A program made the position numbers and the translations under genes. Shown here piece after piece: positions 21,417-34,672 of a stretch of DNA of 38,297 nucleotides. This stretch comes from Macrostomum lignano (Eukaryota): contig NIVC01004680.1 of NCBI GenBank assembly GCA_002269645.1, forward strand, positions 1 to 38,297. Reading direction: 5' to 3'. Numbering within the stretch: position 1 is the stretch's first letter; each line of letters opens with the position of its first letter. The notes beneath the pieces are model-generated. The model was not told the DNA's origin and did not search any database. It saw only the letters and a list, made by a program, of their open reading frames with translations.

Positions 21417-21542
21417 GACTTTTTTCTCCGCTTCGTATTCACGGAGCCGATTTCGCTCTGCAGGATGGCCAAGTCAATGTTGTCCTTCTGCAGCTGCTTG
21501 ATGAACTTTTTGTTGTTCATCCAGCCGAACTGGTAGGAGTAC
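21417..21542 (-). CDS. Upstream phase 2-2 coding exon, probably part of the Hv N-terminus
   Basis: Acceptor gcccgcag|G, donor AAG TC|GTGAGT; YSYQFGWMNNKKFIKQLQKDNIDLAILQSEIGSVNTKRRKK. Splicing to 17770 gives ...KRRKKSRYRHRSSGDESDECDD. Confidence 0.7.
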
Positions 21543-21670
21543 CTGCGGGCCGGTGACAGCTTGACATTCAAATGTACCTTCTTTGCTTCAGAATGCGAAT
21601 CGTTGAAATTTTGATTCTTTATGTCCTGCTTTCGGCTTGGATTTGGTTTGCTTGTGTTATGAATCATGCT

Positions 21671-22000
21671 GATAACCAGCACTGTACATTGCGTCTATAG
21701 ATAACCAGCACTGTACATTGCGTCTATAGATAACCAGCACTGTACATTGCGTCTATAGATAACCAGCACTGTACATTGTGTCCATAGATGACTAGCACTG
21801 TACATTGCGTCTATAGATAACCAGCACATTGTGTCCATAGATGACTAGCACTGTACATTGCGTCTATAGATAACCAGCACTGTACATTGTGTCCATAGAT
21901 GACTAGCACTGTACATTGCGTCTATAGATAACCAGCACATTGTGTCCATAGATGACTAGCACTGTACATTGTGTCTATTATGTCTATAGATAAGCAGCAC
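21671..22000. repeat. 29-bp minisatellite (GATAACCAGCACTGTACATTGCGTCTATA) with variants
   Basis: Direct period 29, some shortened units. Confidence 0.92.
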
Positions 22001-22468
22001 TTTACAATGTGTCTAAAGATAAGCAGTAATTTTAATCACAAGTCAGTTTTCAGTCATATTCACAGTTAAAGTTCAGTTTTATAAAGTTAAGGCTGGAAAT
22101 TCAGTCATCAAGTGCACATTGCCCCACACACTGCTGAGTTCTTCGCTGGCCTCTGAGACTTTGGCAGACGCTTAGAATTCGACTGCAGCCTCCTCAGCTC
22201 CCGCAGCCCCAGGCAACCTCAGCTGACCCCGAAAAAGAAAACATCAGCCGGAGGGGGCAAACAAACGGCCGAAGAAGCGATGCCGTGATTGAGTGGGGCT
22301 TGGGGCGATCGCGGAGCTTCAAGCTCCGCTGGGAAGAACCGGGACAGCAATTATGCGTTACCCCGGATCCCGGCGGCATCCCCGACCGTCGGGGACTCGG
22401 CTGTTTGCGGATTCCGCTAGGAGCTTCTGAGTGGCGATCAAAGATTATAGCACAGGCCTTCACAAATT

Positions 22469-22640
22469 TGTCTGTCTGTCTGTCTGTCTGTCTGTCTGTC
22501 TGTCTGTCTGTCTGTCTGTCTGTCTGTCTGTCTGTCTGTCTGTCTGTCTGTCTGTCTGTCTGTCTGTCTGTCTGTCTGTCTGTCTGTCTGTCTGTCTGTC
22601 TGTCTGTCTGTCTGTCTGTCTGTCTGTCTGTCCGTCTGTG
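22469..22640. repeat. (CTGT)n microsatellite, ~42 copies
   Basis: Direct. Confidence 0.98.
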
Positions 22641-23465
22641 CAAAAGTGTGCTCACCCTTATTTAGTCCCCAGCACTTTAACACCCAGAATGAGCAGCAGC
22701 TAAGAGAGGAAAGGCCTTAACAGGGGCTACAATAGACTGGGCAATGCTGTGAGTTTCATGTATCTTTCGCTTCAACGATCTTCACACGGCTTCCGCTCCG
22801 TGCCATTCTAGGTTAAAACTGCCCGGGTTTTCAATAAAACTTGCTTAAAGTTTAACGAAAAGAAGAGAAATGTGAGCGCAAATCGGGAGTGTTTCGCGTC
22901 TGGATCAGCGAGCCGAAGCGTCTGGACTTCAAGCTGAGTTGGCAGGCCTTGCGATTCCCCAAACAACCCCAAAGAGTGCGCGCGGCGCCTCGAACTTTCA
23001 AATAAACAGCGTCGTAAAGCCGCAGCAGCAGCAGCAGCAGCAACTGCGTGCTGCAGAGAAAGCAGAAGAAAGCCATTTTAGTATCCACCCAGAGTTCCAG
23101 AGCGCGCAACGGTGGAAATGTGTCCCCCCAAAATATTTTTTGCTTGCTGCATCCTCTGCGCCCGGTGCAGCTGCGCAGAAAGCTGCTGGCACAGCGGATC
23201 CCCAGGCCTGCCCGCCCCCGCCCTGGGTGTCCAGCTGGTGCTGATAGCCGCTGGTCTGAAAATGATGCGCTGTCGCTCCAGCCCCGGCTGCCAGGGGGGG
23301 GGAGAGCTCTCGGGTCGGAGGAGAAACCCGAATTGTGGAAAAATATTTACTTAGAAGGAAAAAATTCTACAGGTGCTCCGGGACGGCAGAGAATCGTAAT
23401 TAAGATGAAGTGGAAGCTGCTTCGCTGTGTGGTAAAGTAAATGAGACAGGTTTGACTTCATGGAA

Positions 23466-31530: not shown

Positions 31531-32280
31531 TATGGGGAGATAGGGAGATGGGGATATGGGGAGATGGGAATATGGGAATATGGGGATATGGGGACATGGG
31601 AATGTGGGGGGATGGGGAGATGGGAATATGGGAATATGGGGATATGGGGAGATGTGAGGATACGGAGATGGGAATATGGGAATATGGAGAGATGGGAATA
31701 TGGGGAGATAGGAATATGGGAATATGGGGATATGGGGGATGAGGAGATGGGGAGATGGGAATATGGGAGATAGGAATATGGGGAGATAGGAATATGGGAA
31801 TATGGGGAGATGGGAATATGGGGAGATAGGAATATGGGAATATGGGAATATTGGGGATGAGGAGATGGGGAGATGGGAATATGGGGAGATAGGAATATGG
31901 GAATATGGGGATATGGGGAGATGGGAATATGGGGATATGGGAATATGGGGAGATGGGAATATGGGGATATGGGGATATGGGAATATGGGGAGATGGGAAT
32001 ATGGGGATATGGGGAGATGGGAATATAGGGAGATGGGAATATGGGGAGATAGGAATATGGGAATATGGGGATATGGGGAGATGGGGAGATGGGAAGATGG
32101 GGAGATGGGAATATGGGGAGATGGGAATATGGGGAGATGGCAGATGGAAGATGGGGAGAAAGGGAGATGGGAAGATGGGGAGATGGCAGATGGGAAGATG
32201 GGGAGATGGGGAGATGGGAAGATGGGGAGATGGCAGATGGAAGATGGGGAGAAAGGGAGATGGGAAGATGGGGAGATGAG
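31531..32280. repeat. Purine/G-rich compound repeat (GGGAGAT/GGGAATAT/GGGGATAT)
   Basis: Direct; strongly strand-asymmetric with almost no C on +. Confidence 0.93.
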
Positions 32281-33104
32281 AGAATAGGGATCTGGGGGAT
32301 GGTAAGAAGAGGAGCTGGGAAGATGGGAATTAAGTACGTGAGAGATGCAGAGGTGCGCAGAGCACGGAGAGACAGGGCGGTGCGGAGGCGGCGGTCCGGG
32401 GGCAATTCTTGTATCTGATTAGCCGCTGGTCTGATTGACTCCGGCGGGATGCCGTGCACTGCAGCAAATGAATGGAGCGGGACGGAGGGCAAGGATGGCG
32501 GCGGCGGGGAGGGACGGAGGGCCCCTTGGGCTGCAGGAACAGAAAAGGAGATGATTTGGTGGGAGATGAGGCCCAGCTTCCCAACCCGGAAGAGCCACCC
32601 GGAGAACGGAGGCTCGGGGGGGGGGTCAAGCTTGGCTTCACAATGGAGTGGCTGGAGGGCCTCTCAGCTCGAATCAGCAGTCCGTTGCAACGCGGCTTGA
32701 GCTGGGGAGATGGGGCGAGAGGGGAAGGACGGGGCAGAGACTTTCACGGACTCCGCGGCTCCCCTAGTGAAAGAAAGTTCTCATAGGTTCTCATTATTTC
32801 CTAAACCAGATCGAATTGCCAGATCACAGCACGGTCACAAGAATTTGCTTTTAGAAGGAAGAGCTGAATTAGGTGGCAGCGAAGTTTGCAACTTTTTCGT
32901 AAGAATTTTTCAGGAAAATCGAGCGGCAATGGGTGTCGGATTTCCAAGATCGATGGGCGGCGTGTGGGAGCGCTGGCTGCTTTCTCACGCCTTGAGTGAG
33001 ATTACAAGCGGCTGTGGCAGCCCGCGAGCTAGAATGAGATTTGATGGCTCCCGGAAGGATCGGGACAGCTTCTGAAGAATTGGGAGGTCAGGGTGGAGTT
33101 CAGG

Positions 33105-33730
33105 GTGGTCCCTGAATGATTGGGTGATCCCTGAAGGATCAGGCGGTCCCTGAAGGATTGGGCGGTCACTGAAGTATTGGGTGGTCCCTGAAGTTATTGG
33201 GCGGTCCTTAAAGGATTGGGCGGCCCCTGAAGGATTGGGCGGTCCTTGAAGGATTGGGCGGCCCCTGAAGGATTGGGCGGTCCTTGAAGGATTGGGTGGT
33301 CCTTAAAGGATTGGGTTGTCCCTGAAGGATCGGGTTGTACCTGAAAGATCGGGCGGACCCTGAAGGATCGGGCGGTCCCTAAAGGATAAAACGGTTCCTG
33401 AAGGATGAGGCGGTTGCTGAAGGATTGAACGGCCCCTGTAGGATTGGGTGGTCCTTGAAGGATTGGTTTGCCCTGAAGGATCGGGTTGTCCCTGAAAGAT
33501 CAGGCGGACCCTGAAGGATCGGGCGGTCCCTAAAGGATAAAACGGTCCCTGAAGGATTGGGCGGTCCCTGAAGGATTGGGAGGTCCTTGAAGGGTCGATG
33601 CGGTCCCTGAAGAAAATTCCCTGAAGGATCGGCGGTCTCTGAAGGGTCGGTGCGGTCCCTGAAGAAAATTCCCTGAAGGATCGGGCGGTCTCTGAAGGGT
33701 CGGTGCGGTCCCTGAAGAAAATTCCCTGAA
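33105..33730. repeat. 19-bp degenerate minisatellite (CCCTGAAGGATTGGGCGGT) with higher-order blocks
   Basis: Direct period ~19. Confidence 0.9.
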
Positions 33731-34278
33731 GCCCCGTTGCCAAAAACTCCCCAAGCAGGAGCGGCTCCACTTGTCCCCTAACCGAGGCAGCAGCAGCAAC
33801 AACTATCCCCCCTCCCATATCTTGCCGATATCTGCATCTGCACAAATATTAATATTTTGTCGTTGCCAGGGGAAATTCCGGCACCCGACCCCGGCTGAGG
33901 AAAGTCACTTGAATTCCCAGTAATTTTTGCATTCAGTAAAATACGCTTAGAGGCAGACAGACGGGCGATGAGGAAGTTGAGGGAATTGAGGAATTTTCTC
34001 CCACGGCCTGCCTGGCTGCCAGCAATAAATGGGAAATGAAGAGGCAGGCAGAAAATTACGATAAAGGGACGAGTCTTCTGCTTTTTGTGGTCCAGTTGCT
34101 TAATATCTGAGTCTGTCACTCCGTCAGTTATTCGTAGTTTCCCACTTATCAACAACAAGCCGCTCCTGACCTTCCATGACCTTCCCTGATGCCGAATGTT
34201 GACGAGTTCCGAGGATGTTTTAAATCTAAGCTACTCAACGCCCCTCAGCGCCCCTCCATTCCCAGCGGCCCTTCTCAC

Positions 34279-34577
34279 TCGTCCAGCAGCGCTTTCTCGC
34301 GCGAGTGGCTCCGCCCGGAGTCCACAGACTCGGTCCGCTCCCGGCTGGTGCCGCCGAGGCCGGAGCCGCCACCCACCGAGGACTGGCCGCTGTCGGTGCT
34401 CGCCTGCCTGCCGCCGAGACCGCCGGCCGCCCCGCCTCCGGTTGCAGCCGCCGCGGCCTGGATGGCCCATTCGCATTCCGTTGACCAATCGCCGCTGCCG
34501 CCGCAGCTGCCGCCTCTGAGCAGATGCTTGGCTGCCAGGAGCTTGGCCATGGAGCTGCTCGAGTGCGGTCTTCCCAT
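34279..34577 (-). CDS. Candidate first coding exon C (MGRPHSSSSMAKLLAAKHLLRGG...REKALLDE)
   Basis: In-frame ATGs at 34643, 34577 and 34550; donor GA|GTGAGA, phase 2; GC-rich coding-like sequence. Confidence 0.55.
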
Positions 34578-34672
34578 CGGTTGACGCAGAGCTTCAAGGC
34601 TTTTTATTGACAACCCGGGCCTCGCCCACCCGGAGATTCCCATTGGCCAACTGTCCCAGCCGTGTGTGGGAG

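Follow-up and report, generated by a model that had tools for sequence, protein, structure and literature searches.

Can a single gene for a voltage-gated proton (Hv) channel begin at several places and so provide one voltage sensor with several unrelated N-termini? The question is raised by a contig of the flatworm Macrostomum lignano (NIVC01004680.1, assembly GCA_002269645.1), which we analysed over its 38,297 nucleotides (nt), hereafter the window. Its minus strand carries an Hv3-like voltage-gated proton channel gene of eight exons, whose constant exons 2-8 span positions 21542 to 8330. Upstream of exon 2 lie three open segments beginning with ATG, called A, B and C from the nearest to the farthest, each of which is a candidate for exon 1.

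A previous account of this DNA, made from its letters alone (the sequence-only reading), had claimed that A, B and C are alternative first exons feeding one Hv channel. Much of its foundation stands, since the gene is a real Hv gene, exon 2 and the phase-2 intron before it are conserved, and coding signal sets in at the ATGs. The moderate signal in A and C, and acceptors that would permit a serial or cassette arrangement, count on the other side. Judging from the sequence, the best reading of the locus is in our view that two or more of A, B and C are true alternative first exons, and we give it an even chance of being right. B is strongly supported as a first exon, A and C moderately.

The gene and the intron before exon 2

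The gene model was built from tblastn matches of the Hv proteins of M. lignano and of the cestode Mesocestoides corti together with splice signals, and is in frame throughout (Table 1). The composite of the constant exons matches only proteins named 'voltage-gated hydrogen channel 1', from M. lignano and M. corti. A profile search added further cestode proteins and a 129-amino-acid (aa) M. lignano fragment, A0A1I8I230, which is 99% identical to exons 4-5, the read-through 'INGA' past exon 5 included. A0A1I8F401 and A0A1I8HS36 correspond to a diverged second, homeologous M. lignano copy (83-90% identity in membrane segments, 46% in the loop). The motif in exon 2 is conserved among cestode Hv proteins, and the start of exon 8, FVNISKRQSNNALKSMAAMSAGIFGG, resembles cestode C-termini (YVYHSKEQTQNALKSIAALTTGFMGG), which supports the last exon. 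CAG stands at 7/7 acceptors; among the donors, GTGAGT occurs three times, alongside GTAAGT, GTGCGT and GTGCCA. These sites fit what has been published for M. lignano, where the donor motif is GT[G/A]AG and the acceptor motif CAG (PMC8629364). An exact 30-mer from exon 2 had zero matches in metagenome contigs.

The intron before exon 2 is found at the identical position and in the identical phase in Rodentolepis nana (L005) and Dibothriocephalus latus (L006). In these cestodes it is 2.3-2.5 kb long and cuts an Arg codon after two bases, one base before TAT/TAC-AAC-TAC (Y-N-Y; AG/.../A TAT AAC TAC in R. nana, CG/.../T TAC AAC TAC in D. latus, slashes marking the splice sites). The M. lignano acceptor lies one base before TAC-TCC-TAC. 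The intron after exon 2 likewise has the same position and phase in both cestodes, splitting a Ser codon. The upstream partner in the cestodes is one ATG-bearing coding exon, of 50 aa in R. nana and 33 aa in D. latus. The conserved phase-2 intron implies that an ATG-bearing, phase-2 coding first exon must lie upstream of exon 2 in M. lignano as well, and the 16.7 kb available there offer no credible partner other than A, B and C. Their comparison with the cestode first exons gave no significant similarity.

Over the first three exons, intron positions and phases are common to R. nana (10001-14525), D. latus (3065-6121) and M. lignano, with a phase-2 intron both ahead of Y-x-Y-x-L-G-W and within the pre-S1 Ser codon. 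This exon structure is thus older than the split between macrostomids and cestodes. The cestode Logan transcripts of paralogue group 2 (L001-L004) have a single common 5' sequence and are uninformative on alternative exons. The Hv protein of T. crassiceps (P0007), a Taenia-type paralogue, has an annotated acidic N-terminal extension of 77 aa. In the related transcripts L001-L004 a stop interrupts that extension and the product begins MTSKTLES, which makes the N-terminus annotation of this second flatworm Hv paralogue uncertain.

Three candidate first exons

A, B and C lie 5.9, 8.7 and 12.7 kb upstream of exon 2. Their lengths all equal 2 modulo 3, their donors match the phase-2 acceptor at 21542, and the joined products are in frame, reading ...GRNG- (A), ...SRSRK- (B) or ...ALLDE- (C) followed by YSYQFGWM. 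The ATGs of A and B have A at -3, and A is preceded by an in-frame TGA at 27784-27782, 11 codons upstream of its ATG. On checking in the sequence, all these particulars of the sequence-only reading, from coordinates and lengths to donors, joins and the stop upstream of A, turned out to be correct. Because a phase-2 G/GTGAG donor contains an in-frame TGA, the three segments are also complete open reading frames (ORFs), of 90 aa (A), 68 aa (B) and 100-122 aa (C), and would be noticed as such by anyone scanning ORFs.

The start of C requires a choice. The in-frame ATG at 34550 is likelier than that at 34577, because the TATA-like element AATAAAAA sits only 31 nt before the latter. The still longer start at 34643 that had been suggested for C is rejected: the extension 34643-34578 is non-coding-like, with a codon log-likelihood ratio (LLR, described below) of -0.85, and lies upstream of the TATA-like box.

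CCAAT and/or TATA-like boxes, all consensus matches, are found 30-140 nt upstream of each ATG, and a TATA-like match occurs in just 10/119 GC-rich 200-nt bins. In A, B and C alike, the first ATG past the TATA-like box is that of the ORF. Each segment may well have its own core promoter. By eye, no perfect copy of the spliced-leader trans-splice acceptor motif [T/C]TNCAG is seen ahead of A, B, C or exon 2.

Coding signal and chance expectation

Codon usage was scored by a log-odds measure (the LLR, in bits per codon) trained on ~580 codons of exons 2-8, and compared with a null set of 260 ORFs (mean -0.64, standard deviation 0.34, maximum +0.04). Known exons, when left out of the training one at a time, score +0.04 to +0.86, and their G+C content at third codon positions (GC3) is 0.84. 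B is the strongest coding-like segment upstream of exon 2: its LLR of +0.28 exceeds every null ORF, the signal is specific to strand and frame, and its G+C at codon positions 1/2/3 is.51/.63/.87. Both A and C score -0.03, with one null ORF of 260 higher in either case; the corresponding G+C values of C are.65/.69/.84. In a sliding window the score is ~-1 before each of the three ATGs and 0 or above from them onwards.

When GC3 was scanned frame by frame across the entire window, every known exon was recovered. Upstream of exon 2, microsatellite artefacts aside, the scan's yield was limited to the 5' half of A, the whole of B and the 3' half of C; nothing else in those 16.7 kb is both free of repeats and periodic in GC3. 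A phase-2 GT[AG]AG look-alike terminates 12 of ~353 other long open segments (about 3-4%), and it is unlikely by chance that three out of three coding-like segments should end in one (~4e-5 naively; p ~2e-4 in an approximate Fisher test). Once coding potential is taken into account, A, B and C are more than chance would give.

Other upstream segments fared less well. A fourth candidate, D (26206-26052, minus strand), is non-coding-like (LLR -0.46) and was rejected, as were, for the same reason, three further minus-strand open frames with donor look-alike ends.

A proposed mechanism

The ancestral layout is that of the cestodes, with one short coding first exon, a phase-2 intron and an exon beginning Y-x-Y-x-x-G-W. 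In M. lignano, three unrelated, lineage-specific coding first exons would instead be arrayed upstream of exon 2. Transcription from three promoters would yield messengers translated from the first ATG of A, B or C, each with its phase-2 GTGAG donor spliced to the acceptor at 21542, and the three exons would presumably be used in a mutually exclusive manner. The predicted products, of ~680-710 aa, would differ solely in a cytoplasmic N-terminus of 67-100 aa that looks disordered and is rich in Ser, Ala, Gly and charged residues. Such N-termini might differ in function, and their Ser/Arg kinase-type sites do differ (RRLS in A, SRISKS in B, RERTES in C). The complete scheme, in which three independent promoters and three unrelated lineage-specific first exons give one voltage sensor three cytoplasmic N-termini, is tentative, and we hold it with slightly less than even confidence.

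Competing interpretations

The phase shared by the three donors could also serve a serial or cassette arrangement. C, or an exon beyond the window, would then be the sole first exon, and B and A would be internal, symmetric phase 2-2 exons, included or skipped. This we consider unlikely. The sequence-only reading had seen no convincing phase-2 acceptor that could link the segments in series, and on this point it must be amended, because in-phase CAG acceptors exist at 30566 (B) and 27773 (A), with frames open to the ATGs, so that C-B-A-exon 2 can be read in series. The exons thus delimited, of 279 or 231 nt for B (the latter from a weaker acceptor at 30518) and 291 nt for A, are all multiples of 3, and one common phase runs across the exons, as cassette exons require. 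Besides, the nearest acceptor is normally chosen given an upstream donor (rule cited in PMC8629364).

The quality of these acceptors speaks against such a chain. The 25 codons from 30566 to the ATG of B score -1.19, which is strongly non-coding, and the signal begins at the ATG and not at the acceptor. The site at 30518 is a GAG, versus CAG in 7/7 real acceptors, and that at 27773 has the poorest pyrimidine tract, 8/20 versus 10-16/20 for the seven real acceptors. Chance in-phase AGs are expected in such short upstream stretches, at ~0.3-0.5 each. Finally, an ATG with A at -3 placed at the onset of coding in both A and B would be unlikely if these were internal exons (we estimate 0.004-0.04).

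Apart from the in-phase acceptors, several observations weigh against A, B and C as alternative first exons, and many of them would suit a gene with a single true first exon, most likely B. The other segments would then be fortuitous ATG-ORFs in GC-rich unique islands, or non-coding or rarely used 5' exons. Taken by itself, an ATG-ORF that is 150 nt or longer and runs into GT[AG]AG is no more than chance expectation: 17 such segments occur upstream of exon 2 on both strands, eight on the minus and nine on the plus strand (four versus two in phase 2). Long ORFs are frequent, several of them overlapping, in the very islands that hold A, B and C. The last 45 codons of A are non-coding-like (-0.41, against +0.34 for the first 44), the codon score cannot separate its sense from its antisense strand, and the Ala/Gly-rich middle of C is non-coding-like, down to -1.0. 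The score itself was learned from a single gene, and the promoter-box matches were chosen post hoc and are weak evidence. The coding status of A, B and C rests on intrinsic signals, since no homologues were found at E <= 10 in a word-indexed search of 5.8 billion proteins, nor at E <= 0.001 in a full HMMER search of 1.84 billion representatives; a Pfam search likewise gave no domain in any of the three. The cestode orthologues, moreover, carry one first exon.

A single first exon, too, we think improbable. Whole A and whole C outscore all but one of the 260 null ORFs, their signal sets in at the ATG, each terminates at a consensus donor in the phase that exon 2 needs (~3-4% chance each), and CCAAT plus TATA-like boxes precede both.

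Much less probable is a start within the intron adjoining exon 2, which would extend exon 2 to an ATG at 21667 (MIHNTSKPNPSRKQDIKNQNFNDSHSEAKK...) and make A, B and C irrelevant. Ahead of its acceptor, the frame of exon 2 is indeed free of stops over 51 codons (21545-21697, minus strand), with ATGs, and the tblastn match of the M. corti protein reaches weakly into it. Several features contradict this start: the extension 21667-21545 has an LLR of -0.74 and a GC3 of ~0.53 (real exons: 0.84), the values shifting abruptly right at the acceptor, no significant resemblance links it to cestode N-termini (p = 0.1-0.99), the cestode intron falls at exactly this point, and the ATG abuts a 29-bp tandem repeat. 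We therefore rejected the extension as the true N-terminus on codon usage, the cestode comparison and the conserved intron; codon usage says that it is not normally coding. This open frame, with its ATG at 21667 and a GTG in the 21682 region, could in principle allow a transcript that retains the intron or begins in it to encode a channel.

Scarcely credible is a reading of A, B and C as genes in their own right for small proteins of 68-100 aa (ATG...TGA), unrelated to the channel: each is a complete ORF by virtue of the TGA inside its G/GTGAG donor, but three out of three ending in G-TGA-G has a probability of ~(0.034)^3, homologues and Pfam domains were not found in the searches above, and the conserved phase-2 acceptor downstream requires a partner.

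Comparison with known systems

The idea that A, B and C serve as alternative first exons invites comparison with loci that combine variable and constant exons. In UGT1A and the clustered protocadherins, tandem paralogous variable first exons, each encoding a folded homologous domain, are spliced to constant exons. The resemblance suggested by the sequence-only reading holds for the layout, because several 5' exons have donors compatible at the sequence level with one acceptor of the first constant exon, each has a putative promoter of its own, and the products would share the remainder and differ in their N-terminal part. It fails on paralogy. A, B and C are only three, look disordered and are without detectable similarity in DNA or protein. 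BLASTP of B against C gave E = 0.43, blastn between the three unique islands gave no match, and the MAFFT alignment was random-like. A shuffle test of B against C (p = 0.004) had hinted at paralogy, but the signal vanished with composition-adjusted BLASTP and is thus a low-complexity effect. The lack of similarity among the exons and their islands indicates that the three do not form a cluster of variable exons duplicated in tandem. Another difference from those loci, whose variable exons have no acceptors by which they could be chained, is the presence of possible in-phase CAG acceptors upstream of B and A (30566 and 27773), weak or adding non-coding-like codons.

Other channels offer a closer functional analogy. 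Kv-beta1 (KCNAB1 1.1/1.2/1.3) and Drosophila Shaker have alternative 5' coding exons whose N-termini act as inactivation balls. As in these cases, unrelated short cytoplasmic N-termini would be placed on a constant channel core. However, those belong to other protein families and their N-termini have shown roles, whereas the N-termini described here are known from sequence alone.

N-terminal diversity from one Hv gene is known from human HVCN1, which has a short isoform without 20 aa and a cleaved form, Hv1Sper (PMC10911540, PMC10377628). There it changes gating or regulation, and the proposed M. lignano gene would be similar in drawing several N-termini from one gene. The human forms, in contrast, are truncations of one N-terminus, by an alternative start codon or proteolysis, and not separate unrelated exons. 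In Aplysia, a single mRNA isoform is seen for AcHv1 and for AcHv3, and AcHv2 has four variants that all specify the same protein (PMC10911540). A literature search for HVCN1 with an alternative first exon found no paper.

Type of channel

The constant region encodes a protein consisting of an S1-S4 voltage sensor, homologous to known Hv channels and devoid of a pore domain. The model has four transmembrane segments followed by a coiled-coil-like helix, and Pfam Ion_trans covers S2-S4 only. S1 reads VQIILCAFVLIDAVIVIAEIILEI; the Asp in its LID(A/S) position, which corresponds to the selectivity filter of Hv channels, is invariant across the flatworm alignment, and was equated with human D112 by eye, without formal alignment. 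S4 departs from the RxWRxxR signature, being LLWRIVR here and in all flatworm relatives retrieved, with R1 replaced by Leu. The S1-S2 loop has ~150 aa (exon 4), ~290 aa follow S4, and the N-terminus before S1 has 110-140 aa or more.

By the criteria of PMC10377628, the lengths of loop and termini are those of the unconventional Hv3-type channels, and the xPWRxxR of the mollusc, brachiopod and phoronid type is absent, with Leu where Pro is expected before Trp. AcHv3 and its spiralian relatives combine an S4 without R1, a long S1-S2 loop and a long C-terminus (PMC10377628, PMC10911540). The change of R1 to Leu and the 150-aa S1-S2 loop group the flatworm Hv channels with them, and by its sequence features the M. 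lignano protein is an 'unconventional' Hv3-like channel that would conduct protons. With Aplysia AcHv3 it shares the Leu at R1 (LPWRxxR there, LLWRIVR here), the very long S1-S2 loop and the long intracellular C-terminus; unlike AcHv3 it has no proline in S4, and its N-terminus exceeds that of AcHv3, which has 35 aa. An S4 without Pro also occurs in annelid, bryozoan and nemertean Hv3 forms (PMC10377628). AcHv3 is functional despite the same deviation at R1 (PMC10377628). For Schistosoma, a 2023 review mentions just an elongated S3-S4 loop.

Features and surroundings of the locus

The positions of the gene, the candidate exons and the repeats are collected in Table 1. The sequence-only reading had exon 2 splice to an acceptor at 17770. 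We rejected this site because, once joined, exon 2 reads into a TAG ahead of S1, in a frame other than that of S1; the acceptors that keep the frame are 17651 and 17585. The codon score agrees, with -0.34 (non-coding-like) in the frame from 17770 versus +0.06 for the S1 frame from 17651, an acceptor whose pyrimidine tract is 16/20. A mini-intron restoring the frame after 17770 was discarded as well, since its donor would be non-consensus. The open frame at 17518-17770 (minus strand, SRYRHRSSGDESDECDDGG...AAAATANGGQSLRRATAS) starts from the CAG acceptor at 17770 in phase with exon 2 and terminates at the TAG; it is either untranslated intron sequence or the sign of a 1-nt assembly error in a GC-rich stretch.

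Table 1. Positions of gene parts, candidate exons, possible acceptors, promoter-like elements and repeats in the window (a slash marks an exon boundary).
Feature	Position	Strand	Remarks
(GA)30 microsatellite	34670-34729		just upstream of the promoter-like elements of C
CCAAT	34646-34642	-	upstream of C; consensus match only
TATA-like AATAAAAA	34608-34601	-	31 nt before ATG 34577, 58 nt before ATG 34550; consensus match only
Candidate first exon C	34577-34279 (299 nt)	-	ATG 34577; donor GA/GTGAGA, phase 2; ~90-100 aa
19-bp array	33103-33717
8/24-bp array	31531-32327
TATA-like TATAAC	30590-30585	-	100 nt upstream of B ATG; no ATG between box and 30490
Possible acceptor ttctcccag/A, upstream of B	30568-30566, first exon base 30566	-	phase 2, open to ATG
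Possible acceptor tctgag/T, upstream of B	first exon base 30518	-	weaker
Candidate first exon B	30490-30288 (203 nt)	-	ATG context cctaacATGc; donor AA/GTGAGA, phase 2; 67 aa + 2 nt
(ATAG)x144 array	28637-29211
CCAAT, two copies	27891-27887, 27865-27861	-	upstream of A; consensus match only
TATA-like AAAATAT	27820-27814	-	-68 from A ATG; consensus match only
Possible acceptor ccggcag/A	27775-27773	-	7 codons upstream of A ATG; phase 2
Candidate first exon A	27751-27483 (269 nt)	-	ATG context aacaagATGg; donor GG/GTGAGC, phase 2; 89 aa + 2 nt
14-bp x175 array	23467-25816
Exon 2, first constant exon	21542-21417	-	YSYQFGWMNNKKFIKQLQKDNIDLAILQSEIGSVNTKRRKK(S); acceptor cccgcag/G; donor TC/GTGAGT; both ends phase 2
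40-bp x22 array	20494-21379
10-bp x57 array	17796-18363
Exon 3, pre-S1 and S1	17651-17428	-	acceptor cctcctcgtcag/C at 17651 or cggcggcag/C at 17585; donor A/GTAAGT
Exon 4, long S1-S2 loop and S2	16230-15707	-	99% identical to A0A1I8I230
Exon 5, S3 and S4	13018-12895	-	S4 motif LLWRIVRVING
Exon 6, post-S4 helix	10836-10721	-	LMMHEKQRGEFRIQLQKRARRMSEMK...
Exon 7	10291-10213	-	KHILFLEELCRELGGGEEQIANCKPR
Exon 8, C-terminal tail	8973-8333, stop TAG 8332-8330	-	in frame by phase

The window is eukaryotic DNA with ~50% G+C and is rich in satellite arrays. Over 17000-38297, such arrays, those in Table 1 and others, make up most of the intron sequence separating the candidate first exons, and A, B and C lie in the few unique GC-rich islands.

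Outside the channel gene, the only ORF with coding-like codon usage is one of 182 aa at 3375-3920 (plus strand), in which Pfam found no domain. It shares a short motif with an ORF at 13536-13904 (plus strand; VQDVLLLTLQGPFRRG and VQEVLLLTLQAPYRSA, respectively), and presumably resembles the C-terminal end of the ORF2 proteins of non-LTR (long terminal repeat) retrotransposons. A 130-codon open frame at 5129-5518 (minus strand, ...EAYDEELMEFIRFIECGNDDALPPLPSEEEACPEDPMRNKPCNSADVSVIIVDSSS...), also without a Pfam domain, is like a real acidic protein segment and may be an exon of the next minus-strand gene downstream.

Implications

The N-terminus of Hv1 is a known control point of gating: the human short isoform has slower activation and a stronger response to phosphorylation, and the sperm-specific cleaved form is a second N-terminal example (PMC10911540). 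Hv diversity has so far been described as the outcome of gene duplication, truncation or cleavage, not of alternative coding first exons. Since transgenesis, RAMPAGE and RNA-seq are available for M. lignano (PMC5730564), the three putative promoters are directly testable.

If only one of the candidates is real, this is an ordinary unannotated gene, and the model of exons 2-8 with its conserved phase-2 intron would still help the annotation of flatworm Hv genes. If the alternative first exons are real, the finding would be of moderate interest, for Hv specialists, as the first known case of an Hv gene diversified by such means, and it would offer an example of the birth of first exons from unique GC-rich islands between satellite arrays. 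Different cell types of the worm would then express proton channels that are differently regulated or targeted, and the locus would supply naturally made chimeras with which to probe the role of the Hv N-terminus.

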